A stretch of 64,000 bases of DNA from Thalia democratica (lineage: Eukaryota). Every line of letters begins with the position of its first letter. The first letter of the stretch is position 1. Below, in pieces: positions 103 to 31,501 of the stretch. Both the position numbers and the translations under genes were made by a program. The DNA lies in contig OZ241834.1 of the NCBI GenBank assembly GCA_965202585.1, positions 25,606,001-25,670,000 on the forward strand, written 5' to 3'. A model generated the notes under the pieces. The model did no database searches. It saw nothing but the letters and a program-made list of their open reading frames with translations, and had not been told where the DNA came from.

Positions 103-1235
103 CCATCGGATACCTGAAAGTGAGGACAGCATCCGGGTATGACTGCAACTTTTCAATGAGCTCCATCTTCTACAACCAGCACGCTGACACGTGCACCACG
201 GACTACTACAATCTGTTCCTGGTGGGAAAGTCCACGGAAGATCCGTGGTGCGCCACTAAGAGAACCATGGGCGTGTACACTCACTGGGACTGGTGTGAAG
301 GTCGGTGTCGAAAATATTTTAAATTATTAGTTTCATCCAAACTAGTAAAATTAATTGTGTGCTTTTTAATTTTCAAATGCTAGAATGATAAATAGTTCTT
401 AATGTTTAATCGTAACAAGATATACTAAAAATATTTAAATATTTTGATTTTTTTTTTCTAACTAACAATACTATAAAAAAAAATTAATTTAAACAACAAT
501 AAAAGATCTTAAAATGATTAGATCTTTTTTAATAAGTAGTATTTAATAGTAGAGTTCGAAATGCTATTAAAAATTATGATTTTGAAAAGATTCAATTAGA
601 ATTACTTAAAGCATATACAAAAATTTTAGACGTCTTTAAAAATAAAAGTTAGAAACTCACTAAGTTAATTAATTATTTAAAGTTAAATAATAAAGAAATA
701 ATACTGTAGATTACACGTGGAGTCATACAATGTCTGCTTATAAAGGACCAATGACAAAAGAGTATCATTTTAATAAAAACTACATATTAAATAATTACAA
801 CACGGCAAAAGAAGTTTGTAAATCGAGAGGATACGGTTGGGATATTGCTGACTTTGGGTTTATTATCGAAAATGAAAATGTTTCTAATCAAAAACTTTTG
901 AAAAATAAAAAACAAATAGAAAAAATAAGGTAATTTTAAGTTTTTAAATTTTATTAATTAGACAATTTATTTTCATATTATTTGTTAAGTAATTTTTAAA
1001 CAGTCATTAAGAATATATACACAGTTTGTAATTTATTTATAAAAATAAAATTGAATGTTAATTTTTCTGTAGGGAAATATTATACCCTTTGATATCATAC
1101 GAAGATAAATTTTGGGTTCGAAACATAAACAATGAAGAAATGTGCATCAAGTTTAAACACGGATCTTTGAAAATTGGTTCATGCTTCGAACGAACATTTT
1201 TTGTTTGTCAACGAGACTTGATGTTTATGAGTTAA
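103..1235 (+). CDS. FN2-like + C-type lectin-like secreted protein, copy A (3' three exons; signal-peptide exons not found in window, presumably upstream)
   Basis: Exons 103-300 (ag/gt, phase 1-1; IGYLKVRTASGYDCNFSMSSIFYNQHADTCTTDYYNLFLVGKSTEDPWCATKRTMGVYTHWDWCE; FN2-type C..C..WCAT..W.WC pattern), 710-929 (phase 1-2) and 1073-1235 (EILYPLISYEDKFWV..C..C..FVCQRDLMFMS*) splice in frame. Same exon layout and phases as copies B and C. Confidence 0.8.
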
Positions 1236-1481
1236 AAAGTTCAACATTTTTTGACTTTGTTGATATATAAATGTAACAACTATCACTTTTAAATTATAAA
1301 TATTATTTTTTGCTATACACAAAGTTTTAAAAATCTTATAAGATGAAAAAATAGTTTTGTTTCAAATTTAAATTGTTTATTCTGTTAAATATAATTAGGT
1401 TTTCTTGCCTTTTTAAGTAAAGCTTGAGTTAAGTTTTTCTTACTCAAAACTTGTGTTTTAGAAGAATATCTCACCTGAGAT

Positions 1482-1866
1482 CAGGGTTTCCCAAACTGGG
1501 CCAATACAGAAATTTAGAGAGCAGTATGGGGCCAAAGGGGGGCATGAGGTCATAAATTGAAACTTACACTAGATGTTCTGGAGTTGATGATGAAGAGCAA
1601 AAAAAAGTCTTAGGCAATTTTAGTAGTAGTTTTAAAACTTGTACTAGGTATTATGGAAAAAGTTAGGGGGCCACAAGACGGGGGAGTAGTCACACGGCCA
1701 TAGTTTTAAACTTTCACTAAATATTCTGGAGTTGATGATGAAGAGCAAAAATAATAAGGTCTTCGGCAGTTTTAGTGGCATGTTTTGCGAAATCCTGTTG
1801 AAGGGGGCTATAGCTTTTTTAATTTCTCTAAAGGGGGCCTTTTGAAAAAAATTTTGGGAAACCCTG
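1482..1866. mobile_element. hAT-like non-autonomous DNA transposon (MITE)
   Basis: 14-bp TIRs CAGGGTTTCCCAAA / TTTGGGAAACCCTG. Flanking 8-mers CCTGAGAT / CCTTATAT match 6/8 (decayed TSD). Internal direct repeat containing TTCTGGAGTTGATGATGAAGAGCAAAAA twice. No ORF. Confidence 0.75.
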
Positions 1867-4160
1867 CCTTATATAAAGCTTAACAAAATCATATTAAAAA
1901 TATCTACAAATTTTTTGCAGAGTTATATAATTGTTATGCAATTTAAATTTTATAAATATAATGTTATCTCTATTGATTAAAAACAATCAAAATAAAACAA
2001 ATGATAAGTTGTGATTAATAACAGAACGTATTTTTTTCTTAAGAATAAAGTTTTAAACTAGTTTGAAGGCTTTATAATTCTAAGGATTTTATTTAGCGAT
2101 TTTTATACTTAGCTATTAAACTTAATTTTTTATCTTTAAATCTGATACCTTAGCTACAACTATCCAACAAGTAAAAATATAAAATAAATGAGCTTCTACT
2201 ATACGAAAGAAAAATACAAACATCTAGAAAATCAACGTCTATTAAGAAACCATAAAAGACTAAAAGTTTTATCAACTGTGTTTTACAAGTCTGTAAAAAC
2301 CTTTTAATTAGTTATATAAAACATTCAAAAAGTGTAGCAAGTGCATTTATCATTTAGTTGTTCTCTCATCGAACACATAGCATTTAAATTTGTTTTTTTA
2401 TGTTATAATGTTTTGATAATCCACAACAACATTCCATGTTATAGTCAGATAAATAGTATTATCCCTCATAAAATTATTAAATTCAATTAGTAAACTACAT
2501 TGTAGTTTGTTTTGTGAAATCAATTGTTTACTTAAACAGTTGTCAACTTTTTTTTACCACCCTAGGATGTCAAATAAAGAAGTTCAAAATATACTTTTTT
2601 CAATATCACAAACAAACATAACATTTAAATATTTTTTTTCCTCCATATTTAAATGTTTAGTTAAATATTTCAAATAAATTTTAGATATACTTTGGTGAAA
2701 CTTCATACTTTTTATTTTTATAAAATTCAGTTTAGATTAATATTTTAAGTAGCCTTTTTTTATAATGTGATTCTAATAAATTGCTCTTTTCACGTTTAAT
2801 ACCTAAACTATTGTTTTTAAAACACAACCTCAACAGAATAATCATTTAATATTTTGTAAAACTATTTATTTTCTAAAAAGGAGTACAAAATGCATATAAC
2901 TTCCAATTAGAGACTTAAAAATACTTAAGAACTGCCAAAAAAGCATAAACGTTTTTCAAATATTGAATTTTTTTTTGAACTTAGGCTTAACATAGTTCTT
3001 AGAGTCAAATGGTAGTTTAGAACTAGCAAAAAAAGAGTGTTACATTAAAAAAATATATATAGACTTTAATTTCAAAAAAAAAATTAAGATCATAGAGTTT
3101 TAACGCAATTATAAATTGTAAAAGAAGAAGTTACCACAGGTTAAAGACTTTAGTGTTTTCAAATAATGTTTTTACTATTGAAATATAATCAAATGAGGAT
3201 ATTCTACTAGCTTTTATTGATATACTCAATTAAACTCAGTTAAGTTTTTTGCATTAATATGTACTCTAAAAAAAGTAGTATAACAAATTAGTCAAATTAA
3301 GCAGCAAACAATAAACTATAATTGTAAAATAAACCTTCAATAACAAAAGTTCTGAATAATGGTTCAGAAAATTTTTAAAAGTAGTGCATAGTAGATGGTT
3401 AAATAAACGCTAGGTACACGATTAAAGTTCTGAAAATTTAAATTTTGACATTTTAAATCCTGATGATTCTTGCTTAAATATTAATTTGACAGTTTTTACA
3501 GTAAGAAGGTTATCTATTAGAAGTTCTATTACATAATAAATTTCTTAAATATTTTTTGATATATAGCTACAAAAAACTTAAAATTTACAAAAATGTGCCT
3601 ACTATCAGTAATAATGATTTTTTTCTTAATTTTTTTTGAAAAATATTTTACTACAATAATCTTGAGAAGTACACCTCGTACAATGATTTTATTTTAGAAT
3701 TTAAAATGGTTTTATTCTAAATATGGTTTTTTTAAATTTTTATATGAAAATTTGAATCGTCCCTTTTATAAATTGTCATGCTAACAGAAATTTAATGTAT
3801 ACTTTATAATTTAATCTTTTAAAACGAAAATATGGCGAATTGAAAATAGGGTTAAAAAACACTTTTTTATCTTGATTTCAACATTAACCATAAAATTTTA
3901 TGTGCATAAAAAATAATCCTTTTGTGAAAGTTGAAATTTATTGATTATATGATTATATTGATATCATATAGCTTACTAATTTTAAAACACAATAAAAAAC
4001 CTTATTATGGTCTTTAAATATTATTAAGCTACAAACTTTATAAAAACCATAAATATTTATGCAATTAGTTCTACAAAGTAAGCTTTCAAGAGAAACCAAG
4101 TCAAAAATCAAAAACAATTACCTAACACATTTAATTTTTTCTACATATAAGTATAGTTTA

Positions 4161-5237
4161 TTAACAGTCTTTAAGGTTATTTAGTTCTTTGAAAACACTA
4201 TCCACAGTTTCCAATATCTTTTTCTTGTCACTTTCGTGCAAAAGATGATTGAACTTCTGCTGGAACTTGTCCGAGTGCCACAAGGCCATCTGCCTGATAA
4301 TATACTTTCTCCTCACCTTTGCATCGGCTCCTTTCTCCACACCCTTCATTATGACCTCGATCATCTCCTTGAGACTTCCCAAACAAGGCCAAGGGATGTC
4401 GTTGTACTTGAGCTTTTTGTCCTTCACTCCCTTCATATCTTCTAACTTCTGCTTGTACGTTTCGTGTTGCTGCTGCAGTTTGAGCTTCTTCACTGGAATC
4501 AGCTGCATTTCAGGTTTTCTTTCTAATTTCTTTGTTTGCTGTTCATTCAACTTTTGTCTTTTAGTTGGCTCTTGATGCTCTTGTTTGTGGAACTTGTGTT
4601 TCCTTGCGTATTCTTGAGACATGCGCTCCGCCCACTGGTCAAAAGTTTCAACGTCTTCTTTGACATTATCCCAGTATCCATCATTGAACGGGCTTTCAAA
4701 CTTTGAGCATTCAATCTCTATCTCTTCTGCCAATATCTCTTCAAACGTGCGTTTAGTTCCAGCTGATTCTTCTTCAAATTTGCTGGAGTTTGAATCTGTT
4801 GATGAAACATCTTCCAAGCAAAACTTATGATACCTTTCCCTTGCCTTGTTCAAATAGTCCACTGGGGTCTTGCCTTTGTCATTTTTCTCGTCAACTCCAT
4901 CAGGAAAATGCTTGATAAGCGGCTTCAAAAGATCCTCGTGGCACTTATACAGTTTGAAGTTGTCCAGCACGTACTTTGAAGCCAGGTGAGCCGGAAGGTT
5001 TCCTCTGTAATCTCTGATGTCTGAGCTGGCTCTGTGTTTGATCAAGCATCTGACAATCGCGTCGTTTCCTAATGAAGAAGCAATGTGCATGCAGGTTCGT
5101 TTCCGCTTGCCCTTGGTGAGAAAATCAAGGTTGTAATTGATGTTTTTCTTTTCAAGCTTCCTGAGGTAGTGTTTTAATTTGATGAGAGAGCCGCTTTGAA
5201 CAAACCGGAAAACCTTTTGCTGGTCAAAATCCTTCAT
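4161..5237 (-). CDS. NFKBIL1: NF-kappa-B inhibitor-like protein 1 (IkBL) homolog, 358 aa, uninterrupted ORF
   Basis: N-terminal ankyrin repeats (TCMHIASSLGNDAIVRCLI; GNLPAHLA; GKTPVDY), acidic stretch, charged coiled region, and C-terminal IPWP...LWHSDKFQQKF motif typical of NFKBIL1. A splice acceptor (ttttcag) about 19 nt upstream of the ATG implies an upstream exon that was not located. Confidence 0.8.
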   Translation of the reverse strand: MKDFDQQKVFRFVQSGSLIKLKHYLRKLEKKNINYNLDFLTKGKRKRTCMHIASSLGNDAIVRCLIKHRASSDIRDYRGNLPAHLASKYVLDNFKLYKCHEDLLKPLIKHFPDGVDEKNDKGKTPVDYLNKARERYHKFCLEDVSSTDSNSSKFEEESAGTKRTFEEILAEEIEIECSKFESPFNDGYWDNVKEDVETFDQWAERMSQEYARKHKFHKQEHQEPTKRQKLNEQQTKKLERKPEMQLIPVKKLKLQQQHETYKQKLEDMKGVKDKKLKYNDIPWPCLGSLKEMIEVIMKGVEKGADAKVRRKYIIRQMALWHSDKFQQKFNHLLHESDKKKILETVDSVFKELNNLKDC

Positions 5238-7623
5238 GTTATGTAAATATCTTAACCTGAAAATAGTTTAAATGTAAGTAAGATTTAAGTAATGTTAAAT
5301 TATCACTGTTCTTTATTGTAATTGATTGTTTAACTTTTAAACGACAACTGAAACTTAAAACAAAAATATAGCAAAAACTATAGCTTTATTTTTAACATAA
5401 GAAAAATTAAAACATTATTTTTGTTGTACTACTGCAATCTGTAGTATAAGATGTACGAAAACTCATAGAGATTTTATACCTTGTAGTATCATAACAATAA
5501 CAAAGGACTTTGCATCTAAAAGAAAAAATATAATGTTGTAGAAAAAAAGTTGTTTTAAAAGTTAAAAGAGATTTACAAAAAATATCAAAACCAGCCTGAG
5601 TTAAGAAATAGAAAAAGTTTAACAAGCCTGAAGGTTAAAATTTAAAAAAAAATGATTTAGTATGTGATAACATTGTAAAAAACAATCTATTTGAAGATTT
5701 TCAAATGTAAATAATCATGATTAGTACTAAATTTAGAACTAAACTAATTTCTAAGTTAGCAATACTTCTTAATTTGAAATTTTAATTATTATCTGTAAAT
5801 TGTTTTAATTTTTAGTTATTTGTAAAACCCACTTGTAATGCTATTGTTTGTTTAAGGTTAATCATTTAAAACAACTTAAATTTTAATATTTTTTGCTATT
5901 CATGATTCTAATTAAGAATTTAAATAAAATATTTAGATGTCTATTAACTTTGGTCTATTTTTCTAAAATAAAGTTATCATTATTTTTTTCTATTATACCA
6001 CACACTATTTGTATAACAAAATAAACTTAACTTCTTATGAAACTTATTCATTTGCTTTTCAGCACTTTAGAAATGACCTAAACAACTATTAAAACAAATA
6101 AAAAAAGGTAAAATTTGTTTAAAAAAGTTCCTCTGACAAATTTTCCAAATGATTTTCACAGTAAACTTTTAGTGAGATATATTTAAAAGAGCAAAGTTTT
6201 AATTACTTGATTAGTCAGCATATTAAAAGCAGTAATGTAAATATTATTGAAGACTCTGTGTTTAAGTTAAGTTTAAAAGCAAAAGTTTTATAGCAACTTT
6301 TGAATATTAATTTTTTTATAATAAAGTAGGTAATAATTATTTTTAAAAGTATAAGTTGTGTTACTGGTTTGTCTTTTGCTGTTCTTGTACTTGTAGTATT
6401 TAAATTTTCTAAAACATCTAACTTTTTACTACAGTGATGTACATAACTGGAACCAAAATATTTGCATATTATGTGTGCAAATTTATAAAACAAAATTCAC
6501 AAAAATTACAAGTTTTTAGTTTAATATCCAACAAAAAAAAGAGACAAAAACTTTGTTAGTAACTTTCAACACTTTAAAACATATAATAATTATAAAATAC
6601 ATGCTTACTCTTAAACAATTGAGGGCTAAAATTGACTATTTTGATGAATATAATTAAGTGTTACATACAGACAAAACTAGATTTCTCGTTTTTAAAATTG
6701 TTTTTGTTTCTTTTCTGTTCCATGCGTTTCAGAAATTATTTATTTTAAATACAACAAGTTTTTGTTATTTTTAAGTTAAAAATTATTAAAAGCTCCTAAT
6801 AACATTTTATACAATTTTAAAACATCTGATTTTTAAAAAAATTGTTTTATTAAAAAAAAATTATAAACAGGATACAAAATACTCCTTGCTAAAACTTTTT
6901 TAAAAACATGCCACAATGGTTTTCTGTGAAAAAATTTTTAGCTTCTCAAATATATGTGCTCTAGCATATATAATAAAGTATTCTGGTTGAATTTTAGCTT
7001 AATTACCATAAATGCACCCCTGAGTTGAAAAATGAACAGTGTTTTTAAAAGAAAAAAATTTATTAAAATACTTTGAGTTTTCAGATAATGTATTTTATGT
7101 TTTAATGAAAAACATGTATATCAGATAAAGATGTCAAAAACAATAGTCAGATAGCATATTTTATATAAAACATATATGTATTTCAGGTCTTTTAAGGTAA
7201 TTATTGCGGGCTTTAATTTTGAAATATGTTATAGAGCATTTTGAGTAATTTTGAGTTCCCAGAAAATCTGAGGTCTAGAGCTCATAAAAAGTTAATTCTT
7301 ATTCTTCATAAAAATTGCAGACCCATACATTTCTATTAAAAAATTTTTAAAAGTTACTATATATCAAATGTAAATAAAGTGTTTATACTCAATAAAACTT
7401 ACTTATAGTTTATATACGAGTAGTCTTCAACCTTTTTGAAAGCTGTGTAAATTAAAAATCTTTAATTAGGATATGTGTCACAAGGCTATCAAAAATGGAG
7501 CTTGTTATTTAAAAATAACCTTTCTTATGTTTATGGTCTAAATATGTGTTAGTAATTATAAATAACAATTTAAAAATATTAATTCATATTAAAAATATTG
7601 TTTTTTTTTTTAAAACAAAAAAA

Positions 7624-7642
7624 ATATATATATATATATATA
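7624..7642. repeat. (TA)n microsatellite
   Basis: Short run of about 9 TA units. Confidence 0.7.
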
Positions 7643-7828
7643 TCTTACTCTATTTTTGGTGTACTAAAAAAAATATATGCACTAATACATAGATGTCTTC
7701 ACCTACATGCTACTGTACTACTACTTTATATAACACCTTTATATGTTAATTTTTGGAATTGGTAGGTGTCAAAAATGCACAAAGGGATACTTTTGCTTAA
7801 TGGATCAATTTTGTACAAAAACACTATT

Positions 7829-8195
7829 CAGGGTTGCCACTAGTTTTTTCAAAATTTTTCCAGGTTTTTCAAATTTCTTCCAGGTTTTTAAAAGTACTAT
7901 TTTTTAAAAAGGGTCTATTTTTAGTGTAAGTTAAATTTAAGGTAAGAAACTGTGTTCAATAGTATAAAAAGGTTAAAAAGATACTGTAAAGCTACTTAAA
8001 ATATATTTTTTAATAAAAAATTTTTGGTAATGACAATATTTTTTTATCTATATGATAAATTTTTTGATTCAAACCGAAATTTTACTACTGAACATGTTAA
8101 AATTCTTAAAAATTCCAAGTTTTTCCAGGTTTTGTTTTTACCAAAATAGTCAAATTCCAGGTTTTTCCAGGATTCCAGATAAAGTGGCAACCCTG
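7829..8195. mobile_element. Non-autonomous DNA transposon (MITE) with CAGGGTTGCCACT termini
   Basis: Perfect 13-bp TIRs CAGGGTTGCCACT / AGTGGCAACCCTG. Exact 6-bp direct repeat ACTATT on both sides (7823-7828, 8196-8201). Subterminal TTCCAGGTTTTT repeats. Confidence 0.85.
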
Positions 8196-8329
8196 ACTAT
8201 TAAATGGCATCAATTTTGCAGGAGGGATCATTTTTGCACAATTAGTTATAACTAAATCATAATTTATGCTGAATCATTGTAAGATTTTTTTAAATTTCAA
8301 AATATCCTGAGTGTCCAGAGTGAGAGGCA

Positions 8330-8477
8330 GCCCAGATAACAGGTTTTTTTGGTTCATTAGTGATTTTTATTCGAAATTCCAGTTTTATTTTTCAAATTTT
8401 CTCATATTCCTGATATTATTTACCCAAAATGTTAAATTCCAGGTTTTTCCAGAATTCAAAGACTTTTGGCAACCCTG
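8330..8477. mobile_element. Partial copy (right end) of the CAGGGTTGCCA MITE family
   Basis: Ends in AAATTCCAGGTTTTTCCAGAATTC..TGGCAACCCTG, like the 7829-8195 element. Left end not recognisable; start approximate. Confidence 0.55.
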
Positions 8478-8725
8478 TTAAAAGATTTTAGCTTTGGTAG
8501 TATTAAAATAACTTCAATAGATTAAATAAACTTATAGTTGAAGTGAGAAGTTTGAAAATATGTAATTAATTTTGTGGTTGATAAAGCAGTAGTAGTTGAA
8601 ATTACATCATCAGTTTTTAATAAACACATTAAAATAAGAACTTAAAAAACCATTTAAAATGATTAATTATCAAAATACTAAAGTATAAGCTATTTTTGCA
8701 TGTGTTAGAGATTGAAGGGCATATA

Positions 8726-9316
8726 GGGGTTACCACCTTTTTCACAATTTTTTTCTTATTTTATAGAGTTTTAACTAAGCTTTAAGCTGTTTTTTACAGA
8801 TATTTAAAATTCAAAGTAATTTTTGAAATATAGCAGGTCATTAGGAAGCAACAATAGGTTCCTTATGATAGGTGCAAACTAAAATGGCAAATAACTACAA
8901 ATCACTAAAATTTAATCTTCTCCTACGCTTTTTGAGACAAATACCTCAAACTTTCAGGAAGTGTTCCTTGGAATATTTAGAAAATACTGTTGGATCAAAA
9001 TTTAAAAATAAATAAATAAAAATTCTACAACAAAAAAAACAAAAAACTGATTGAAATCTATGCGACAGAATTTTTTAAATGTTGCAAAAAAAATTTTATA
9101 AAAGTTTGAGGCATTTATCTCAAAAAATGTAGGAGAAGATAGATTTTTAGTGAAATAGTCTTTTTTTGCGGTTTTAGTTTGTGCTTCCCATAAGGAACCA
9201 ATTGTTGCCTCGACTTTGACCTTTTATATCTCAAAAATTTGTAATAGCATCTTGTAGCTTAGTTAAAACTCTATAAAACAAGATCAAACTGTGAAAAAAG
9301 TGATAACTTCCCCCCC
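8726..9316. mobile_element. Long-TIR foldback-type non-autonomous DNA transposon
   Basis: Arms 8726-8954 and 9101-9316 are imperfect inverted repeats over about 220 bp (e.g. TTTTATAGAGTTTTAACTAAGCT / AGCTTAGTTAAAACTCTATAAAA; CTTCTCCTAC / GTAGGAGAAG). GGGG...CCCC termini flanked by TATA on both sides. Confidence 0.8.
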
Positions 9317-9407
9317 TATAACCTGAATATAACTTTGTGAAGTACCAATGTTTTTATTAAGTAATAGTTTATTTCTGTCTTTGCATCTTATACTCAGAAA
9401 CTACCAT

Positions 9408-9947
9408 TAGGGTGTTTATTGGTTTTTAGCAAATTTTCTCAAGGTTTTTCAAAATTTCTTCCAGTTTTTCAAAGTTTCTTTCAGGTTATTGAAAATTCTT
9501 CCAGGTTTTCAACATTTTTTCCAGGTTTTTCAGAACTTCTTCCAAATTTTCAAAATTCCTTTCATGTTTTCAAAAATTTTTCCAGGTTTGAATATAATTT
9601 TGAAAATACATCCTTTTTTGACCATTTTTAATAGTAAATTAATCCTAATTCAGAAAAGGTGTTATTTGATATATTTAAAGTACTTAAACAATACATTATT
9701 ACTAATATTTAATGTTTGTTTTATTCTAATGCAACCTGTAGTGTTATTTTGAATCAATTTTGTCTATATGATAAATTTTTAGTTTCAAATCAAAATTTTA
9801 TTACTCTATATGAAAAAATTGGTTAAAATTCCAGGTTTTTTAATGATTTTTGTTGAAAGTTCTAGGTTTTACCAGGTTTTTTTATTTAATTCACAAATTC
9901 TAGGTTTTCCATGTTTTTCCATGATTCCAGGTTTTGTTGCAACCCTG
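9408..9947. mobile_element. Older copy of the CAGGGTTGC MITE family with expanded ~20-bp subrepeat
   Basis: Right end TTGCAACCCTG; degenerate left end TAGGGTG; many tandem TTTTCCAGGTTTTTCAAAA-like units at 9420-9600 and 9830-9935. Confidence 0.65.
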
Positions 9948-11566: not shown

Positions 11567-11742
11567 CTTGGTTTCCTAAACTCATTTCTACAAGCGCCCC
11601 CTTTTCAGAAAATTTAAAAATAATCGCCCCCTTAAATGTGAGTTTCGAGTCTCTCGCAAAAAGTACTTAAGTACCCCTTCGGCCCCTTTGCAGCTCTCTG
11701 ACTTGCTAATATGGCCACAAGAGGATTTGCTTAGTAACCCTG
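11567..11742. mobile_element. Degenerate short hAT-like MITE
   Basis: GC-richer island with termini CTTGGTTTCCTAAAC / GCTTAGTAACCCTG resembling the 1482 element, and internal CGCCCCC motifs. TSD not convincing. Confidence 0.4.
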
Positions 11743-12834
11743 TTTTAAACTAAGGTAAAGTTTACAATCAAAGAAAAGTTTCTTCTTGTAAAATTATATT
11801 TTTATTACAAAACTAATCTATATAATTGTATCCGTAATTACTAATAAACACTAAATAGTTTAGAAACACTAAGAATAAAGTTTAATTAGCCAGTTTTTAG
11901 TTTAATAAACTTCTGTAATTACAATATACAAAAAACTTAAAAGATAAAATATACTTTTAAATAAGATGCTCTTTTTATTCTGCGCACTTTAAAATCGTCA
12001 ATTTAGTTTGTCAACCAGACATGTTAAAAAGCTCTGCTTTGTTTACTCGAGCGTGAAATTACTAACTTAAAACAAACCAAAGTTTATACGCTTCATTGCT
12101 GAATTACCATAGTAATTGTTAGCATTTTAACAAGTCTGTTGTCAACGTATTTTTAAATAACAATCATTGAAAAACCTCCTTTACATCATGAATAGTTTAA
12201 CAGAACTATATAGCAAAAGCTAAATTCTGGATAAATAAACTAAGGGATGCAAAAGAATTTACTTATTAAATTCCACAATTAGTACAAAATTAAAACAAGT
12301 TTCAAAATGTACTATCTATTTTGCTAAAAATACTCCAAAGTTGATGATTAAACATATAGTAACCGGTATAGATAATACGAGTTTACTCTATGAACACAAA
12401 GTACATAATTATCATATTTATAAGACGTATAGTCTTAACTGATAACTTTAGTTAAACTAAGAAAAACTGTAAGTATAGGTTAAATATAATTTATAACTAA
12501 ACTCACAGTAGTTGTATAAAGTATAACAATGTAAAAAAGGAGTAATTTAGCTTTGAATATACTTAAATTTTTGTTAAAAGTTTTAAAATGTCTCTCACAT
12601 AGCTAGAATAATTAAAAAGTTATCAAAATTCAAATCAATTGGTTTTGCTTTACGATAGTTTATTTTTACGATTGCAATCTCCATATTAGTGAAATTTTCT
12701 TCAAGTGCTCAACTTATTGAACAAGAATTTAAAAATGTAGTCCAAAATTTAACAAAGACAACAGGGCTTTTTTATAAGCATATTATACTTATCAGTTGAA
12801 AACACTTACACAAATAAAATATTTGACTAATTAA

Positions 12835-14540
12835 TCACAAATCTTGCTGGCAAACGTAAGAGGCTTGTTCAAAACACGAAGCAAATTTCAACGCTCCTTC
12901 GTTGTATCTGATGCAGATTCTTGTGTTGTAAAAGTTAAAGTGATGAACCCAAAAGTTGTGCTTTGTTGCCGCTAAAGGGTACAATATTTCCCTGCAAAAA
13001 AAATCTAATATTTATTTGTTCAAAAAAATATGCTTGGTAGTTGTTTACCTTATATATACAATAAATATCTAAATAATACTTTTAACAGTACATTTAAGTT
13101 TTAGCAATCTTATTAAGAAAGTTACTTTATTTTTTGAACTGATTCGTCTTTATTAACACTCTCTATGTCAGTAATATTTTTGTTTTCCACATCAAGTCCG
13201 AAATCAGCAACTTTCCAAGGGGAGTTACAAATTTTTCTTGCCTTGTCGTAAGTAACTTCGAATAAGTAACTTCTACTGAAATAGTATTCTTTAGTCTTTG
13301 ATCCTTGATAAGAAGGCATTGTATGACTCCATGTGTATTCTGAAATTTTCAATAAACTTGAACTTTTTAAACATTTAATTGCTTCTACACTTTTAAAAAG
13401 TCGTTTATTTTATTGAATTAGTAATCAATTGAACATTTACAGTTAAAAAAAAACGATTTTGATCAAAATCATTAATATTAATGTCATTATTTGTATGTTC
13501 ACAACTGTAACTCAACTAAAATTTGTTATAATCAACATAGAGAAACGTCTTTATACTTCATGAACAAATTTTATCAATTTTTTTTTATGATGGCTTTCAT
13601 TTATAAAGTATTTAAAGAACGTAGCAAAAGAAAATCAAAAAGCTTATTGCAGCAAAAATGTTTTACTAGGCTTAGGGACTTTAAAAGGTTAAAAAAAATA
13701 GCAGTTTAAATGTTGTGTTCATGCTATAACTGTGTCATACAGGCATCATTAGTAAGTTACCAACTAAACTCTGTTGAACTCTGAATATAATTTATATAAT
13801 TGTCGTCGTCAGCTTTAACAAACTGAATACTTTTGAATTTTATTTGATGAAGCCTATTTTTAACTCACTTTCGCACCAATTCCAATGAATGCGACCCCAA
13901 GACAATTTTGTCGCACACCAGGGTTTTTTCGTTGTTTTACGCCAAAAAAGTGAAACGTAATCTTTAGTACAAGTATCCGAGTATTGTGGAGACCACGGAG
14001 TTCCAATGGAAAAATTGCAATATTCCCCCATAGAAGTTTTTATTTTCAAGTATCCAATAGCTTTGTAAAAAAAGTGGTTACTTTAAACTTAATTTTGATG
14101 TATATTTTGTTTATACATAAAAGAAAATTACAAAAAAAAATCATAAACAAAAAGTATTTTGAAAATTTAATAAATTTGTAATAGAGAATAATAAACTTTG
14201 TTTTAATAACTGCATGAAACTTAAGACCTAAAATATGGAAACTTTAAGTCATCAAATCCGAAAAATTTTATCTGAATATACTCACAGCTCGGAAGTTGTT
14301 CTGAAAAGGAGAAAAAACTGACCAAGACCTGTTGTGAATTAAATAAAAACTAATACTAATAAAATCATTGTTTTCCTTTTTTTTTTGTTTAGCTTCATTA
14401 AGTTGTATTCATGCTTTAAAAATAAATGATTTACTGTTTGTTTTGCAATTTAATAACTAAATAAATTTAAAATCAGTTTTAGTTTTTGCTATTTATTTAA
14501 AACTTACAACAATCAGAAACGAAATAGGTCTGCTTTTCAT
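12835..14540 (-). CDS. FN2-like + C-type lectin-like secreted protein, copy B (5 exons, 212 aa)
   Basis: Exons 14540-14508 (MKSRPISFLIV), 14328-14286 (VLVSFFSFSEQLPS), 14060-13869 (FN2-like), 13339-13126 and 12991-12835 (..FWV..C..C..YVCQQDL*). All introns GT-AG; 639 nt with no stop or frameshift; hydrophobic N-terminus; no TM segment. Confidence 0.85.
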
Positions 14541-16396
14541 TTTATTGTTATGTTAATGTACAATCTGTTACAGTTAAACATGAGTCAATCAATAACTGGC
14601 TTAAATATTATAAATCTTTTTTTAGTGATATAAACATATACTTCTAGTTTTTTTATTGTTTTTGAATAATTGAACAAATTAAGTAAAAATTTGTTGTTTG
14701 GTTAGAACTGGTTAAAAAAACTCTGAATTAATAATAAAATATTTAATGAACTTATAAAGTGTACCTTCTACTATTTATGAAAATATTAAGTGAAAACAAG
14801 TTTTACAAAAAAAACGAACTAAAATAAAGGTCTTAACACATTAAACAAACTTATTTTTTTAACTTTTATGTTCTAGCCGTAGCTATAACATTTGGTATGC
14901 AAAGGTATTAAGTAAAGAGCATTCTTCTAACGAGTTTATATACAAAATTAATTGTTTTTTGTTTTGAAACTTTTATGAAAACATTTATAATTACTAAAAA
15001 TAGACGTCTTTGTATATTTTTAGACGTTTACAAATGTTTTGTTTTTATTACTTTCAAAGTACCAGTGTAAAAACAAAACAAACTTTGTACAATCATTTAG
15101 CTTTAATTTAGTATTACATAACTGTTTTGCATTTTTAGTATGCTTGTTTTTTTTTTTTTAATTAAAATGATGGCGTAAACTGACATGTTTTTTTCAAAAA
15201 CACCTCAAGTCACATTATAATATCTTTTAATAACAATTAAAAAAAATAGTTATGTGTTACTTAGTTATTAAATTTTTAAAAATATTTCTATGTGTATAAG
15301 GTACAAATATAAATTCTAAAATATGGTTAGGTATAAAAAGAAAAAAAAAAGTTTTATAAACTTTTAAAACCATAAAGTCGTTAGCTTAGATTCTTAGAAC
15401 AATGAAGATTTTTTAATTAATTTATAAACTTTGATGAGTTTAGTACATTTGGGTCAAAAATCTTTTTTAAATTATCTTAGAACTAAGAGCCTTAGAATTG
15501 TAAATTTAAAAACTTGAAATATGTAAGTATGTTTATTTGTTTAAGTTTTAAAGTATATGTTAGTTTTAATCAGCTTACATTTTCCTAACCTTAACATAAA
15601 CTAACCTGGTAATATAATGATTTTCCTAAATTAGTTTTTTTAAACTATAAGTTTTATTTTGTTTTTTTTACACACTAATAACAGTTTTATTTCAAGTTTA
15701 GCCTAATGTCTTCATGCATGTTTATATAAAAAAAAGTTACAAATTGTACTCAACTGATGGTCTCGTTTTATTTAGTTCAAACAAGTGAAACATTGTTTAC
15801 TTAATAATTCAAATTTTTTTATTAGCTAACTTTGAATCAAAAGTTTTCTTTTTATAATGTGTTCGTTTTTCAATTACAAAGTTTTATACAATTATACCTT
15901 TTTTATACAAAAAACTTGTATGATAAATATATCGCAAAAAAAAAAAAACATAAATAAAGTTGGACTTGATAGCAAAAAGTTAACAAATGGATATAGTTTT
16001 TTTCAAGTTGAAATATTTAAAAATTTGAGCAGTTTTTTCAAATACCAAAATAAAAAATAGCGTGATAAATAAAGCAAAAACTACCAGTTAGTTGAAATAA
16101 GTTAAACAATTTTATGTTGTTAAATAATTTATTGCAAGTAATAAATTAAACTATAAAATCTTTCAACGCGTAAAAGAAAAAGTAGTAAAGTTTTTTTTAC
16201 ATTTCATATTTATTCCGCATACTCAAAATAAAATTATTAGGAGAACATGTTTAAAAAACCAAAGTGTTGTGTTTATCTACTACAAAATTCTGTGTTGTAT
16301 TTCTAAACTACACAAACATTTTAAACTATTTTTCTATGTATGTGATATGAACAAAAATGTTTCATTACTACAAAACAAAAAGTGTTTTTAGTAAAT

Positions 16397-18805
16397 AAAG
16401 TTTGAAAATACAAGCTAGTTTCAAAAGCATACGAAAAAGCTGTAAAAAAATTCGACATATAATATGAAAAAAGCTTCTGTCAAAATACTAATTCAAAAAA
16501 ATTTTATTCTTTTGTATAAATCAAAGCTAAATCTATCACCTTCTTTTCCTCTTTTACTTGATGAAAATAACTTACCATTAATTTCCGACTTTGATAAAGC
16601 CTCTTATTTTAACAAATCATTCCAAAAAGTATTTAGTAAAGATTATGAAGATGAACATTTTATACTTATTGATAAGAGTTGTCCTGAAATGCAGGGTTTT
16701 TTTATTAGTAATAATGAAATAATTGAATCTGTAAATCATTTAAAAGATAAAATACTCAGAACAGCAGAAAACATACCTTCGTATTTTTTAAAACGAACTA
16801 TTAGCTCTCTCATTTTTCCAATCTCGTTAATTTTTAATTGCTCTTTAGCTACATCTTTCATACCAAGGCAATGGAAAATATCTTATATTATACCAATATT
16901 CAAAAAAGGAAACAAAAATAATCCATTAAACTATAGACCAATTTCACTAACTAGTAGCTTTTGCAGATCTTTTGAACATATAATTTCATTAAAAATACTT
17001 AATCATCTTTTCTTAAATAATCTTATTTCTCCGAAACAACTTGGTTTTCTTCCTAAACGAACTTCATGTATTCAATTATTGGATTGCCTTCATTCATGGT
17101 TAGTATCTTTTTTTACCAATAAATCTATCAATGTAATTTATACAGACATTCAGAAAGCGTTTGACTCTGTCTCTCATTTTAAGTTAATTAAAACTTTATC
17201 TCAATACAAAATTAATAGAAATCTAGTTGAATGGTTTAAAGAATTTCTTCAGGAAAGAACACAAAGAGTAGTTATCGGTAACACGTTCTCAGAATCCTTA
17301 CCAATTTTTAGTGGAGTTCCGCAAGGAGGGGTTATAGGTCCACTGTTATTTATAATCTATATAAATGATATAGCCTTAGAGGTTGATTCTAATAGCAACA
17401 TTAAGCTTTTTGCAGACGACACATAAATATTTAGTGAATCTAACTTAGTTTTACAAAAATCTTTAGATAAAATCTACCATTGGTTAAAAGAAAGGAGATT
17501 AAACCTAAATCCCAGCAAAAGTCATGTTTTGAATATTCACAAAAGTACACATATTCCAACGTTTGATTTTAAAATAAACAATGCAATCTTACCTAAAACT
17601 GAGGTATTCAAAGACCTTGGAATTTTTATTTCAGATAATTTAAACTGGAACCATCATATTAACTATATTTACCGTACTGCATCAATTTTATCTTTTCAAG
17701 TTCTTAAAAGCTTTATATCTACGGATTTGGTAATTCTTAAAAAAACTGTACCTAGTTTACATCCGTCCTAAGATGGAATACAACACACCTTTATGGTCTC
17801 CATATTCTATAAAAGACATCAACCAACTAGAATCTATTCAAAGAAAATTTACGAGATTAATCTTTAATCGGTGCAACATTTCATATACGTCTTACATAGA
17901 CAGACTAACAAAGCTTAATATAAAAACTTTAGAATACAGAAGACTTGAATTTGATCTAATTACTTTTTTTAAACTGATTAACAATGAAACTGCTATTGAT
18001 TCTCCAACTTTCTTTAAACCTTATGAAAATAATTACTCACTCAGAGGTAATAATAGAAAATATACATGCAAATATCATTTCAACTATGTTGGTTGGCACG
18101 AATCTTTTTTCTATCGTTCGGTAAAAATGTGGAACAAACTTCCAAATGAACTAGTATCGTGCAAAAATCTTAAACATTTTCGATTAAACTTGAAAAGATT
18201 TGATTTGAATAAAATATTTACCAGTAAAATTTATAAGTGATTAGTTTTGTTCATCTCTTTAGCCATTGATTTGGTGTGTGGTATGTAGTTTATTGGTAGT
18301 TTAATCTGTAAGCTACACCTTCCCCTTATAGATTTTAGGTACTTTTCAACTTTGATTTTTTCGGAAGGGCTGTTGTTAATGTGCTTTGGGCTTTAGATTT
18401 TGAAATTATTGGATACTCAGTTGATTCCTAAGCTAGATTTGTGAACTGTTGCTGCCACATTTTTGAAGTGATTTTTGACTGAATATGCCGTCATAACGAG
18501 TGGCAAATAGTAGCTCAGATCAATGTTCTGCGAGATGAAGACAGGTTCTGAAGATTTGACAGAAATGCTTGTTACAGGTATTTGTTGCTTTGGAACGTAT
18601 AATTGGAGATTGGTGACTTTGGAATCGTTGAATTGTGAAAGTTTTAATTTATTCAGTTTTTACTTTGTATAAGTTTTATGTTTATGTTTATTTAATCACT
18701 GTAATTTGTTTTTTTCTTTTTATGTTAGTGTCTTTCAGTTTAAGTGGCTTAGGTTTTAATGCCTAGGTCCTTTGTTGGACAATAAACTTAATAATAATAA
18801 TAATA
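16397..18805 (+). mobile_element. 5'-truncated, inactivated non-LTR retrotransposon (CR1/L2-like LINE): RT region, 3' UTR and (TAA)n tail
   Basis: RT motifs NYRPISLTS, QLGF, YTDIQKAFDSVSH, SGVPQGGVIGPLLFIIYIND, FADDT, and downstream LEYRRLEFDL. Stop directly after FADDT, frameshift near 17750, lesions near 16470-16530. No endonuclease domain. About 550-bp 3' UTR ending in TAA repeats (18789-18805). Start approximate. Confidence 0.9.
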
Positions 18806-20451
18806 AATGTAAGATTATCAGTTTTGCTATAAACGATACGGTTTATAAACGAGTATTTAATTTTAGAGTTTAATACAAACAAGTTTATACAAACAGTTTT
18901 AAGTCAACAACAAAGTAGATAAAAATTAAAAACATCAGTTTACGCAGAAATGATACACAGAGTTTTTTAATTTTAAGAAAAGTTGAAACTACTAGATTGT
19001 TGAATTACATAAAGTAAATTTGCCTATAAACAGTCAAAACAAATTAAACAACATTAGAATAGTTAAGTGTGACTTAAAATGTTTTTATTTACTTATAGAT
19101 TTACGCTTTCGTAATAATTTTTAAAACTAACAAAAACTTTCAACAGTTATGTAGTAAATAAATTTCAAATTTAACAGTTATATAGCTTGCTTATAAGTTT
19201 TTTAGAAAATAGCTAACTGCCCTATAAATTATACTTTACAAGTTTGTTTCAAGTTCCAGATGAATTGTCTTTGTTTTTCTTTAATTTTTCTTAATTATTA
19301 TATTTGAAATGTTAATGTATTCATTAAAATATATTAAAGCGAGAAAAAATGTTGAACAACAGTTATGTCTTTAAACTTTTTAAAATAGTTTTGAATCTTA
19401 TAGAAGTATATAAGTAAAGTTGTTTTTAACTGTTGCAGATTTTTGCATATAACAGTCTAAATGCAAAATAGGCTTTCTTTGTTTTATATTAATGTAAGTT
19501 GTAAGTCTATTATGAAAAATAAACCTTCCAATTTTTACAAATGAATAAGTATAAAAACATACTTAACTACCTACACTACCTCATTAAATACTACCTAAAT
19601 TGAATTAAAAAAAAAAACAAATCTAAAATGTTAACGATAAAATTTTAAAAAATAATAATATTTTTAAATTAATCATTGAAAACATAAATAGTCCTGGTCA
19701 TTTTTTTCTATTCAAAAGCACTTCCTAATTGTTATAAAATTTATTTTACAAAATAGCTATAGAATTAGAATAACTTTGTAATTAAATTAGTCAAGTTTGT
19801 TTGGCGTTCTCTTAAAAATATGATTAAACATAGAGTAGTTGGTATTGATAGTAATGAATTTCTCTTTAAACATAAAGTTTGTTCTTATCAATTTATTTCA
19901 AGATAAAAACTATTAACTGAAATCTTTTAGTCAAACTTAAATTAAGAACAAAACTGTTGGGTTAGGTTAAATTTAGTTTAAAACTAAGCTCATATCAACT
20001 ACATAAATAATACACTTTTAAAATTGGTAAGTAGCCTGTCGATTTAATTAATTTTTTTAATTTTGTGTTTTAGATTTAACTTATAATTTAAAAATTATAG
20101 TTAAAATAATAAAATGTTGGTGAAACTGGTCATGCTGTAAAATAGTTTATTTTAAAATAAATTTTGAAACTGCTTGGGACGATTTTCTATATTTTTAAAC
20201 TGTCTTCGAAAAATACAACTTGAATTTTGTCATAAACGATTTAAACAACAAACGTGTATTTCAAAACTTAAACTTATTTGATCACAGACAACAAAAATTG
20301 AATTTTAAATAACTCTAAAAAAATTCAATATTACTTAGTATGGTTTTAATAGTCGTAATTAAAAAATTTATTATATAAAATGAATAGTTTTTAATAGTTT
20401 TAGTTGAAAATTGTTGTACATAATCAAAATTTTTTGAAGTACATTAGTTGA

Positions 20452-21810
20452 TTACAAATCCCGTTGGCAAACATAGGAAGCATGTTCAGTACATGAAGTT
20501 GTTTTCAAAACTCCTTGATTGTATTTGATGCAAACTATTTCATTTTTTTCGTTGTTGATGTGACGCACCCAAAAATTGTGCTCAGTTGCAGCTAATGGAT
20601 ACAAAATTTCTCTGTAAAAAGTTTAAAAAGTAAATTTTTATTTTTATTTTGTAAACAAAAACTTTCTATTTATCTATCATTTACTTTTTACATTTTGTGC
20701 AATAAATATACAAATAATACTTATAACAATCAATTAGTTTAGGTTTTATCAATCTTATTCAGAAAATTACTTTATCTTTTGAACTGATTCGCCTTGAACA
20801 ACACTCTCTATGTCAGTAATATTTTTATTTTCCACATCAAGTCCGAAATCAGCAACGTGCCACAAGGAGTTACAAATGTTTCTTGCCTTGTCGTAAGTTA
20901 CTTCGAATAAGTAACTTCTACTGAAAAAGTATTCCTTTGTCTTCGATCCTATATAAGATGGCATGGTGTGGCTCCATCTGTATTCTAGAATTTTAAATAG
21001 ACTTTATGTAACAACTCTTAATTAGTTTTATTGTTTTAAATTAAATTTTTTTAAACTAGTATCATGGTTAAACTAAAATATCAGAAGTTAAATGCAATAT
21101 TTTTTTTCAGTACAGTGTTCGTGTTACTATTTTAACATAAAAAAGCGTCCTTAATTTTATCAAATGTTTATTTTGAAAACTTATTTTAATAATTATTTTA
21201 TTTAATATTTACGCTGGCACCAGCCCCAATCAGTGAAACCGGGAAAATACAATGAAGTTGCACACCAGGGGGTTCCCAGTGTGACGGGGTAAAACAAAAA
21301 CTTCTGATATTTTCTAGTGCAAGTGTCAGTGTACTCTCGAAGATAAATAGATCCGATGGAGAAGTCGCAATCGTGTCCCATGGAAGTTTTCACTTTCAAA
21401 TATCCAATCGCTTTAAAAAATGTAAATTCTTAAATTACTCTCAGTAAATTTAAAACTCCTTATAGTAAGTAGTACACGAATATAATTTTATTCTAATAAT
21501 TTTTTTAATTTAACATCAAAATATAAGTACGCAAACTGTGAAAAATTAAACATTTCTTTCTTAATATAATTACAACTTGGAAGTGGTTCTGAAAAGGAGA
21601 AAATATTGACAACAACCTGTCATAGAAAAAATAAAAAGTTCAAAAGTAAGTAATATATTTTTTAAATATTTTTTTATCTGTAATTTTACGTTGTTTTCAT
21701 ATACTAAAAATCTGTTTTCAAAATAACTTTGTTTATAAGAGAGGAACTTTTTTTAATATAATTGATAAAAAACTTACATTAACAAAAAACAAAGCAAGTT
21801 TGTTTTGCAT
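20452..21810 (-). CDS. FN2-like + C-type lectin-like secreted protein, copy C (5 exons, 215 aa)
   Basis: Exons 21810-21778 (MQNKLALFFVN), 21616-21574 (VVVNIFSFSEPLPS), 21410-21213 (FN2-like), 20984-20771 and 20611-20452 (..YVCQRDL*). All introns GT-AG; 648 nt in frame; same phases as copy B. Confidence 0.85.
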
Positions 21811-31352: not shown

Positions 31353-31392
31353 TTTGTTGTTCGAATGATTGTGATGATAGCTTGCACAGCTC

Positions 31393-31440
31393 AATATACA
31401 ACTCATACCTAACCGCGTCGAACAAAAAACTAATTTGCAT
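31393..31440 (-). promoter_or_regulatory. H2A promoter: TATA-like, ACGCG, octamer
   Basis: TATATT near 31393-31398, CGCGT at 31414-31418, octamer at 31433-31440. Confidence 0.7.
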
Positions 31441-31501
31441 ATGTCATAGCTAATGCTTAATCTTGTCAAAAGTGTTGTAAAACTTTTATATTGAATTAGG
31501 T

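Follow-up and report, generated by a model that had tools for sequence, protein, structure and literature searches.

Organization of the gene copies

The window analysed here is a 64,000-nucleotide stretch of the genome of Thalia democratica (assembly GCA_965202585.1, contig OZ241834.1, positions 25,606,001 to 25,670,000), and it contains three copies of a small multi-exon gene. Copy 1 lies on the forward strand at the beginning of the window. Its exon 3 (103–300, 53% GC, with the AG acceptor at 101–102 and the GT donor at 301–302) is a phase 1-1 exon encoding a fibronectin type II (FN2)-like module with four cysteines, exon 4 (710–929, running from phase 1 to phase 2) encodes the N-terminal half of a C-type lectin-like domain (CTLD), and exon 5 (1073–1235) encodes the C-terminal half and the stop codon. 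Exons 1 and 2 of this copy are found ~140–350 nt 5′ of the window start, and it is therefore incomplete only because the window edge cuts it. A similar peptide can be read through the acceptor of exon 3, and a fusion of exons 2 and 3 was considered; it was ruled out because proper exons 1 and 2 with GT donors are present upstream.

Copies 2 and 3 lie on the reverse strand with all five exons inside the window. In copy 2, exon 1 (14508–14540) carries the start codon and the beginning of the signal peptide, and exon 2 (14286–14328), conserved with copy 3 (repeat D5), carries the remainder of the signal peptide and the predicted cleavage region (SFS/EQ). The FN2-like module is encoded by exon 3 (13869–14060), and the two halves of the CTLD by exon 4 (13126–13339) and exon 5 (12835–12991), the latter ending in the stop codon. 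Copy 3 has the same arrangement, with the start codon and signal peptide in exon 1 (21778–21810), the end of the signal peptide in exon 2 (21577–21616), which has a weak GTTGTA donor, the FN2-like module in exon 3 (21213–21410), and the CTLD in exon 4 (20771–20984) and exon 5 (20452–20611, with the stop). A conserved block that may be a promoter or 5′ element lies ~370–540 nt upstream of the ATG of copy 2 (14909–15083, no strand assigned), and it is 76% identical to a matching block upstream of the ATG of copy 3 (22199–22373, likewise; repeat D3). The GC content of the exons is 24–53%, mostly 31–45%, and that of the background is 22–28%.

We reconstructed each of the three gene models from sequence. 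Every intron is of the GT...AG type, and the phases are 0,1,1,2 throughout, so that the splicing into open reading frames proposed in the first-pass annotation is borne out. The spliced frames predict products of 212 amino acids for copy 2, as had been stated, and 214 for copy 3, where 215 had been given. The description of the remaining copy as 5′-incomplete is correct within the window, yet its first two exons are present just beyond the edge.

A predicted small secreted protein

Hydrophobic cores of the signal-peptide kind (Kyte-Doolittle 2.4–3.0) are found at the N-termini, and there is no transmembrane-like stretch after the signal peptide (maximum 19-residue Kyte-Doolittle mean below 1.0). 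The mature proteins contain eight cysteine residues. The stop codon follows directly after the last cysteine motif, at the same position in all 11 copies modelled in this work, and a repeat comparison found no conserved block past the stop codons in copies 2 and 3. These results agree with the small secreted layout predicted at the outset, comprising one four-cysteine module and one CTLD with no membrane anchor or further CTLD, and they give no sign of additional downstream exons encoding either. We can strongly infer a five-exon gene in which two short exons encode a cleavable signal peptide, one phase 1-1 exon the four-cysteine module and two exons the single CTLD, the product being a soluble protein of ~190 residues with four predicted disulfide bonds.

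These exons might instead be part of a larger gene, such as a fragment of the kringle + FN2 + multi-CTLD receptors that the same genome encodes, in which case the protein would be neither small nor soluble. In copies 2 and 3 the stop codon does overlap a GT dinucleotide, which might in principle serve as a donor. These candidate donors are not conserved in copy 1, however, and each copy has its own methionine and signal-peptide exons. Together with the invariant stop and the lack of a downstream block, and with CTLD intron positions that differ in the ORFs of two of the large-gene loci, this makes a larger gene scarcely credible.

The N-terminal module

The N-terminal module spans ~51 residues from the first to the last of its four cysteines. 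Its cysteine spacing is 16/19/15 compared with ~14/14/13 in FN2 domains, and its four cysteines, a phenylalanine and a tryptophan align with those of 11 canonical FN2 domains from the same genome. The hallmarks of FN2 that are present include the phenylalanine two residues after the first cysteine (C1), C-T at C2, W-C at C3 and aromatic-x-aromatic-C at C4; the P-F sequence following C1 and the Y-D-x-D motif are absent. The genome's FN2 modules each occupy a single phase 1-1 exon, as does the module here, while kringles in this genome are divided between two exons.

Single-profile searches fall short of formal assignment. The gathering threshold of Pfam fn2 (PF00040, 22.2 bits) was not reached, the best score being 8.8 bits (E 2.1) for copy 1 with no score for the other copies, and the 55 matches to fn2 in the genome (E ≤ 1) include no exon of the family. 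Similarly, the threshold of Pfam Kringle (PF00051, 34.3 bits) was not reached, and the Kringle matches in the genome (E ≤ 1) do not include the module. Using hhalign, the close copies match canonical FN2 with P 2.9e-4, a score reached by none of 300 shuffles; with a broad family profile the match weakens to P 0.005. When the family HMM was run against 1390 ORF pieces, the best matches were all canonical FN2 exons. In a profile search of the PDB, the top matches of the close copies are the FN2 domains of LY75 and factor XII (E 0.02–0.05).

A broad profile built from eight diverse members gives a different order in the PDB, with the kringles of plasminogen, apolipoprotein(a) and factor XII matching over nearly the full length (E 0.008–0.04), ahead of factor XII FnII (E 0.16). 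The distant paralogues also have the kringle-like sequences PWCY or PFCY and W-D-Y-C. The module could then be a reduced kringle that has lost the outer disulfide, giving an architecture of mini-kringle plus CTLD. We consider this rather unlikely. A kringle has six cysteines forming three disulfides within ~80 residues, and the module has four, lacking the flanking pair. The spacing between C1 and C2 is 16 residues compared with 14 in FN2 and 29 in kringles, the phenylalanine just past the first cysteine and the threonine after the second are FN2-like, the single exon is that of the genome's FN2 modules, and the close copies match FN2 first.

AlphaFold2 run on the FN2-like exon with five family sequences only gave a pLDDT of 46, which is unusable. 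Adding canonical FN2 sequences, which is partly circular, raised this to 69, and Foldseek with that model returned kringles in the lead together with factor XII FnII, all non-significant (TM 0.44–0.57, E > 0.4). The ESM Atlas features of the exon have no informative neighbour. From its sequence we assign the module to the kringle/FN2 clan, with cysteine spacing of the FN2 type. The original designation as FN2 thus stands as regards cysteine spacing, while the similarity is divided between FN2 and kringle and the Pfam fn2 threshold is missed.

Within the module the loops between the cysteines are only 10–28% identical, compared with 74–76% for the frame. Between copies 2 and 3, ω is 1.95 in the loops and 0.08 in the frame, for loops that were chosen after seeing the alignment and comprise ~30 codons.

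The C-type lectin-like domain

The C-terminal half of the protein is more readily classified. When the spliced family is compared by hhalign with canonical CTLDs from the genome, 98 columns align (P 3.2e-5, probability 73%, score reached by 0 of 100 column shuffles), and a global run gives P 6.5e-6 with 0 of 150 shuffles reaching the score. The last-exon profile has 17 matches in the PDB, every one of them a CTLD (best E 0.006), and the nearest ESM Atlas clusters are Lectin_C. The exon 4 profile gave chance matches only in the PDB, for example to Cas1. Single exons, which are half domains, score 16.0 and 18.9 bits with Pfam Lectin_C (PF00059), corresponding to E 0.021 (exon 5 of copy 3) and 0.0025, against a gathering threshold of 22.6 bits, and these matches always cover profile positions 68–107. 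The four canonical CTLD cysteines are present in canonical order, C1 lying in helix 1. The identification as a single CTLD, already claimed from the first reading, is thus well supported by profile-profile comparison and by the PDB matches.

All the sequence motifs listed in the first-pass annotation are present, namely C.F, D-T-C-T, PWCAT, W.WC, A..(I/V)C, FWV, C...C and (Y/F)VCQ, though one needs reassignment. FWV had been taken for the WIG strand. Its spacing to the next cysteine is 13 residues, as for the later tryptophan in canonical CTLDs, and FWV is therefore probably not the WIG(L) strand but the later, loop-region tryptophan. We had also considered a compact CTLD with no long loop region. 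This was dropped, since the domain is only ~13 residues shorter than two canonical CTLDs (L020) and the distance from FWV to the cysteine fits the loop-region tryptophan.

Many invertebrate secreted proteins with CTLDs are lectins, and the homology alone would allow the family to be classical Ca2+-dependent sugar-binding proteins with the CTLD as the working end. The EPN/QPD and WND motifs of Ca2+ site 2 are, however, absent at the aligned positions of all copies, as noted from the beginning. The segment between the tryptophan and the second cysteine reads I/F-N-N/F, the WND position reads L-K-T or similar, and Ca2+-independent NK-receptor CTLDs are among the best matches in the PDB. A sugar-binding lectin is very unlikely on this evidence.

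A larger family under constraint

The family is not confined to the three members first reported. Seven loci are found on the same chromosome, of which six are intact. The exception is the neighbouring paralogue L005, where the FN2-like exon is dead, with a stop codon, a lost cysteine and an AT acceptor. Searches with the family profile for the FN2-like exon and for the last exon match six more, dispersed loci. Gene models were built for four of them; these lie on other chromosomes, with identities of 28–36% (about 30%), and the phases at the junctions are unchanged. The family as a whole, by sequence comparison, is far larger than a trio of genes and also far older. The cluster probably grew through tandem and inverted duplications accompanied by gene conversion at exon 4.

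Comparison of copy 2 with copy 3 gives dN/dS values of 0.44 for exon 3, 0.23 for exon 4 and 0.12 for exon 5, at dS 0.35–1.6. Exon 4 aligns gap-free to two ocean metagenome contigs (83% identity); the AG and GT are retained and the flanks have diverged. Exon 4 of copy 1 with both its splice sites is retained in Tara Oceans contig L030. Against 1.84 billion protein representatives the exon 4 profile found no full-length family protein, the only matches being two ORF fragments of 67–68 amino acids from ocean metagenomes and two spurious bacterial repeat proteins, of which the one inspected is an S-layer/Big_4 protein. A word-indexed search with the FN2-like exon, for which the length window excludes full-length proteins, found one ENA ORF of 77 amino acids (P0005), 89% identical to exon 3 of copy 3.

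The one RNA run found is a marine metatranscriptome with a word share of 5%. Over the copy 2 region (12700–18699) its coverage falls mainly on a LINE at 16.4–18.7 kb, and no contig spans a splice junction; a single contig of 177 nt lies on exon 5 of copy 2 (12822–12974). Nor was spliced cDNA found in JGI metagenome contigs using the exon 4/5 junction pattern or the exon 4 profile. The case for the exons being coding is wholly comparative, and the genes are apparently unannotated and lineage-restricted.

The lack of junction RNA and of any annotated full-length protein, together with the dead exon of L005 and the weak donor of copy 3 exon 2, would be expected if the loci were decaying or never-expressed relics, their open frames left over from recent duplication. 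Yet the dN/dS ratios are well below 1 at substantial dS, six of the seven local copies are intact, and paralogues on other chromosomes that are only about 30% identical retain the splice sites and phases. Exon boundaries are also retained in the environmental relatives, and open frames of 63–72 codons are unlikely by chance in DNA of ~25% GC. We regard relics as most improbable. The loci are likely to be intact and to belong to a multigene family restricted to this lineage of marine animals, encoding secreted proteins with an FN2-like module and one CTLD.

Possible function and significance

We tentatively suggest, from the analysis of the loops and by analogy, that the product could be a secreted binding protein with two heads, in which the FN2-like loops set ligand specificity and the CTLD serves as a scaffold. 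The fast-diverging loops, held around a conserved frame of aromatic residues and cysteines, would determine the ligand of each paralogue, which might be a protein, matrix or a lipid head-group, as for other FN2 domains. A scaffold for protein binding or self-association, like CTLDs of the NK-receptor type, would be provided by the conserved non-lectin CTLD. The immune, mucus, gamete or venom roles first put forward are guesses. A bolder proposal, which we regard as speculative and improbable, is that pelagic tunicates have a soluble, germline-diversified recognition repertoire with the CTLD as handle and the FN2-like module as head, its three loops being under diversifying selection. Duplication, gene conversion at the level of exons and, now and then, loss of the head exon would generate new specificities, and the repertoire would act in the recognition of non-self, microbes or gametes.

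If the models are right, they describe a minimal soluble architecture of one FN2-like module and one CTLD, for which a literature text search found no description. With a frozen frame of cysteines and aromatic residues set sharply against loops that diverge strongly, the family is a candidate for ligand recognition specific to each paralogue. It belongs to an animal group whose secreted proteins, in tunic, feeding mucus and blood cells, have hardly been studied. The modules themselves are familiar, and only the demonstration of a recognition function would make the advance more than incremental.

Comparison with known systems

An FN2-type module directly N-terminal to a CTLD is found in the mannose receptor family (MRC1, MRC2/Endo180, LY75/DEC-205 and PLA2R1), and LY75 provides the best PDB sequence matches for both modules of the family described here. 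The combination had been tied to these vertebrate receptors. That association is too narrow, since the large kringle + FN2 + multi-CTLD genes of T. democratica have the same adjacency, and in both groups, as here, the FN2 module occupies one exon. The arrangement therefore exists beyond vertebrate proteins of the mannose-receptor type, and this genome has it both in giant receptors and in a pared-down form that is secreted. Mannose receptors have a ricin-type domain, 8–10 CTLDs, a transmembrane segment and a short tail, whereas the family has one CTLD and none of the others in ~190 mature residues. Its domains, the CTLD being scanned as single exons, are also too diverged for the Pfam thresholds.

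The seminal plasma proteins of the BSP/PDC-109 type are also small and secreted, and bind through FN2 modules with an aromatic pocket. They and other FN2-only proteins have two to four canonical FN2 modules and no CTLD, where the present family has one divergent FN2-like module joined to a CTLD. The kringles of plasminogen, apolipoprotein(a) and factor XII belong to the same clan, and the broad family profile aligns their T-x-x-G-x-x-C, PWC and W-x-Y-C sequences; they differ in size, cysteine number and C1-C2 spacing from the short, single-exon module. Lastly, the C-terminal half aligns best with the CTLDs of the NK receptors CD94, KLRB1 and CLEC12A. Both have the four canonical cysteines with no Ca2+ or sugar-binding motifs, but the NK receptors are dimeric type II membrane proteins of vertebrates, whereas here the CTLD forms the C-terminal end of a predicted secreted invertebrate protein.

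Organization of the three genes

The gene models were rebuilt base by base, joining short open frames on the same strand through canonical GT...AG introns. Copy 3 lies on the minus strand, with exons at 21810-21778, 21616-21577, 21410-21213, 20984-20771 and 20611-20452 (645 nt, encoding 214 aa), as does copy 2, with exons at 14540-14508, 14328-14286, 14060-13869, 13339-13126 and 12991-12835 (639 nt, 212 aa). Copy 1 is on the plus strand, and has exons at 103-300, 710-929 and 1073-1235 inside the window. The first-pass annotation took this copy to be incomplete at its 5' end, but its start codon, 33-nt exon 1 and 43-nt exon 2, with their GT donors, are found ~140-350 nt upstream of the window start, and the gene is not truncated. 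In every copy the introns have phases 0,1,1,2, in agreement with the GT-AG splicing originally proposed; of the two protein lengths proposed, 212 aa is retained and 215 aa becomes 214.

Outside the genes the window is very AT-rich (22-28% GC), and the exons of the three copies have a GC content of 24-53%. Stop codons occur at a frequency of ~8-9% per codon in such DNA, so that three open frames of 51-72 codons in each gene are far beyond chance expectation, and the recurrence of the same cysteine pattern across the genes makes chance still less likely. The N-termini have the character of typical signal peptides: the Kyte-Doolittle mean over 12 residues is 2.4-3.0, and S-F-S/E comes next. By Kyte-Doolittle hydropathy no transmembrane-like stretch occurs further on in the window copies, and there are eight cysteines in the mature part.

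Between copies 1 and 2 there is a single-exon open frame of 358 aa (4161-5237, minus strand) with ankyrin repeats (Ank_2, E 2e-6), and between copies 2 and 3 a fragment of a non-LTR retrotransposon (LINE; 16464-18240, plus strand; RVT_1 E 3e-24) that is extremely repeated in DNA runs. A marine metatranscriptome covers this fragment better than any other part of the stretch. Copies 2 and 3 share a 175-nt block, at 14909-15083 and 22199-22373, with 76% identity; it precedes their start codons by ~370-560 nt, and may be a shared promoter or 5' non-coding exon. The genes adjoin a tandem histone gene array (24000-60000) with a unit of ~6.68 kb. Open frames for linker histone H1 (25381-25842, 32619-33173, 38939-39499, 45616-46176, 52293-52853 and 58965-59510) and H2A (30972-31469, 37289-37786, 43966-44463 and 50643-51140), all on the minus strand, sit in GC-rich (40-47%), T-skewed blocks.

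The C-terminal domain is by sequence a C-type lectin-like domain

The C-type lectin-like domain (CTLD) is divided between exons 4 and 5. Pfam searches with single exons give sub-threshold half-domain matches (Lectin_C, E 0.021 and 0.0025; UL45, E 0.05), all of which fall in the C-terminal end of the profile. Compared with the PDB, a profile of exon 5 from the close copies (the narrow family) gave CTLDs as eight of nine matches, and one that included diverse paralogues (the broad family) gave 17 out of 17, with a best E of 0.006. These include LY75, CD94, KLRB1, CLEC12A, SIGNR1 and codakine. In a language-model embedding, too, exon 5 has Lectin_C clusters as its neighbours.

We spliced exons 4 and 5 by script and compared the family alignment with four canonical CTLDs of the genome, obtained with PF00059. 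Global hhalign of the narrow family gave a score of 31.4 (P 6.5e-6), equalled by none of 150 column shuffles. Local alignment of the broad family extended over 98 columns with a score of 33.9 (P 3.2e-5, probability 73%), where shuffles score 11.7 +/- 2.3. The C-Y-x-F strand of the canonical domains is matched here by K-x-Y-x-F, their helix 1 by Y-x-x-A-x-x-x-C, their L-A-x-I strand by W-x-V-A-x-F, and their C2-C4 by the last three cysteines of the family. We conclude from these comparisons of sequence that the domain is a genuine CTLD, as was claimed.

Two of the canonical CTLDs belong to locus L020 (C7:10,290,535-10,293,870), a single open frame of 693 codons in which they are followed C-terminally by an apparent trypsin-like serine protease domain, from motifs read by eye. 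The family CTLD is ~13 residues shorter than these two. The FWV motif was previously read as the WIG pattern. It lies 13 residues ahead of C2, as does the Trp preceding the EPN position in canonical CTLDs, and is therefore probably that later Trp and not the WIGL strand. EPN/QPD and WND are absent at the equivalent positions in every copy, bearing out the earlier reading, and the domain is probably not a Ca2+-dependent lectin.

The N-terminal module is probably of the FN2 type

Canonical FN2 matches number at least 55 in the genome, most of them contained in a single exon. The exon 3 modules of the family are not among these, and their best score against Pfam fn2 is 8.8 bits, below threshold. 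The four cysteines, the Phe at C1+2, the Thr after C2 and the W-C at the third cysteine all align with the canonical FN2 domains of the genome. By hhalign the close copies match canonical FN2 with P 2.9e-4 (0/300 shuffles as high), in the PDB they match FN2 domains best, those of LY75 and factor XII (E 0.02-0.05), and when a family HMM was run on 1390 ORF pieces the top matches were all canonical FN2 exons.

A broader profile of eight diverse members comes closer to kringles. It aligns over nearly the full length with those of plasminogen, apolipoprotein(a) and factor XII (E 0.008-0.04); factor XII FnII falls back to E 0.16, and the hhalign match with FN2 becomes weaker, at P 0.005. The exon 3 modules also escape the Kringle Pfam model, and the kringles of this genome are split across two exons. 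Structure prediction with family sequences only gave a pLDDT of 46. This rose to 69 once canonical FN2 sequences were added to the alignment, a partly circular procedure, and Foldseek with that model returned a list of kringles and factor XII FnII (TM 0.44-0.57) in which no E-value was significant. The spacing between C1 and C2 is 16, compared with 14 in FN2 and 29 in kringles. Taken with the presence of four cysteines and a single phase 1-1 exon, this favours an FN2-type module. It is safe to place the module in the kringle/FN2 clan, of FN2 type and outside both Pfam families, a more guarded assignment than the FN2 fold of the first-pass annotation.

Size and age of the family

The family is larger than the three members first recognized. 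With exon 4 as query, seven loci are found on the chromosome of the window: the three copies, a paralogue 5.9 kb upstream of the window (L005; G000 C10:25,598,606-25,601,818), and a second cluster. In L005 the FN2-like exon (phase 1-1; 870-1070) has an in-frame stop, has lost the third cysteine and has AT in place of the acceptor AG. The lesions are limited to that exon, with exons 4 and 5 remaining open; if the dead exon were skipped a secreted protein comprising just the CTLD would result.

The second cluster (L002, L004 and L006; C10:25,915,884-25,948,639) lies 290-340 kb away and contains the same three genes in mirror image, with identities of 100% to copy 2, 97-99% to copy 1 and 92-96% to copy 3. 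In the partner of copy 3 the FN2-like peptide is identical, but exon 4 has diverged (86% aa). A recent inverted segmental duplication accompanied by gene conversion would account for the cluster, as would an uncollapsed haplotype. The FN2-like exon of copy 1 (103-300) is 53% GC, compared with 28-31% in its other exons; L006, its mirror counterpart, is 99% identical across that exon, and the shift in GC is confined to it.

Profiles of the FN2-like exon and exon 5 extend the family to more distant relatives on other chromosomes, where the two kinds of exon share a strand and are separated by ~1 kb. Six of these loci were examined (L031-L036, at C6:74.915, C2:71.378, C7:18.803, C5:30.319, C8:34.328 and C4:57.656 Mb). 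All six have matches to the FN2-like and last exons of the family profile, correctly ordered, and five have an exon 4-like match. Four were modelled at the junctions between the FN2-like exon, exon 4 and exon 5, all of which are GT-AG. In these four the FN2-like exon ends in phase 1, 1-2 residues past the fourth cysteine, the length of exon 4 is 1 mod 3, and the stop follows 2-6 residues past the last cysteine, in a V/I-C-E-K motif. They are 28-36% identical to the window copies, so that sharing of phases and junctions indicates that the architecture and intron plan are old. In L032 the second and third cysteines of the CTLD are separated by a Cys-rich insertion of ~22 residues. The family comprises at least 13 loci, and probably ~20 if a cluster of ~8 exon 5-like copies on contig 8 (34.24-34.35 Mb) is counted.

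Coding constraint and expression

Comparison of copies 2 and 3 gave a dN/dS of 0.44 (dS 0.94) in the FN2-like exon, 0.23 (dS 0.35) in exon 4 and 0.12 (dS 1.6) in exon 5. The block surrounding exon 4 (repeat D2) is 88% identical between copies, which together with the low dS of exon 4 indicates gene conversion of that exon. Relatives of exon 4 occur on two short ocean metagenome contigs, one from Tara Oceans, with 83% identity and no gaps within the exon. Both retain the AG and GT of exon 4, and the similarity falls off in the flanks.

In a marine metatranscriptome run (5% of sampled words) examined over 12700-18699, coverage was mainly of the retrotransposon. One 177-nt contig matched exon 5 of copy 2 with 93% identity, and no splice-junction reads or contigs were found over that interval. 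A search of JGI metagenome contigs yielded no spliced form, and there is no full-length family protein among 1.84 billion protein cluster representatives. The proposed five-exon model is thus upheld by conserved phases, dN/dS and exon boundaries, with no RNA junction found in the one metatranscriptome searched. This comparative evidence argues strongly for the gene models, though it is short of transcript proof.

Loop variation and a possible function

Among the three window copies the frame of the FN2-like module (the N-terminal strand, the cysteines, D-T-C-T, P-W-C-A-T and W-x-W-C) is 74-76% identical, but the three loops between cysteines just 10-28%. When copies 2 and 3 are compared the loops have an omega of 1.95 and the frame one of 0.08; the loops were delimited post hoc, the comparison involves only ~30 codons, and the alignment of the loops is uncertain.

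From what is shown or strongly inferred, the product is a secreted, disulfide-rich protein of ~190 residues, with an FN2-type head and a non-lectin CTLD. By analogy with FN2 domains elsewhere, the head might use its aromatic frame and variable loops to bind a ligand, candidates being a lipid head-group or a matrix protein, whether collagen-like or of another kind. The CTLD could mediate protein contacts or self-association, as Ca2+-independent CTLDs do elsewhere. We offer this division of labour tentatively, judging it possible but rather less than probable.

Relationship to known systems

The family is real, conserved, unannotated and apparently lineage-restricted. It does not reach the thresholds of Pfam fn2 or Kringle, nor, scanned as half domains, that of Lectin_C. 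The marine metagenome relatives fit a planktonic animal. Non-exhaustive text searches of the literature found no description of a secreted family with one FN2 and one CTLD.

In other parts of the genome, canonical FN2 exons have kringle exons on their 5' side and canonical CTLD exons within ~1 kb on their 3' side. These form large genes with a kringle in two exons, a canonical FN2 exon and many successive CTLD exons (L025-L028 and L037-L040; C4:71.69, C6:55.13, C2:23.27 and 23.39 Mb, and C287). FN2 beside CTLD is thus an established arrangement in Thalia democratica. A recent origin of the small genes from the large ones is argued against by the position of the CTLD exon break, which falls after the WIGL strand in the ORFs of two large-gene loci and before FWV in the family. 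The large genes have the FN2-to-CTLD order of the mannose receptor, together with extra domains. The window family has one CTLD and neither a ricin domain nor a transmembrane segment, and so falls outside the mannose receptor family. What is new is the architectural variant, built from domain types that are themselves already known.
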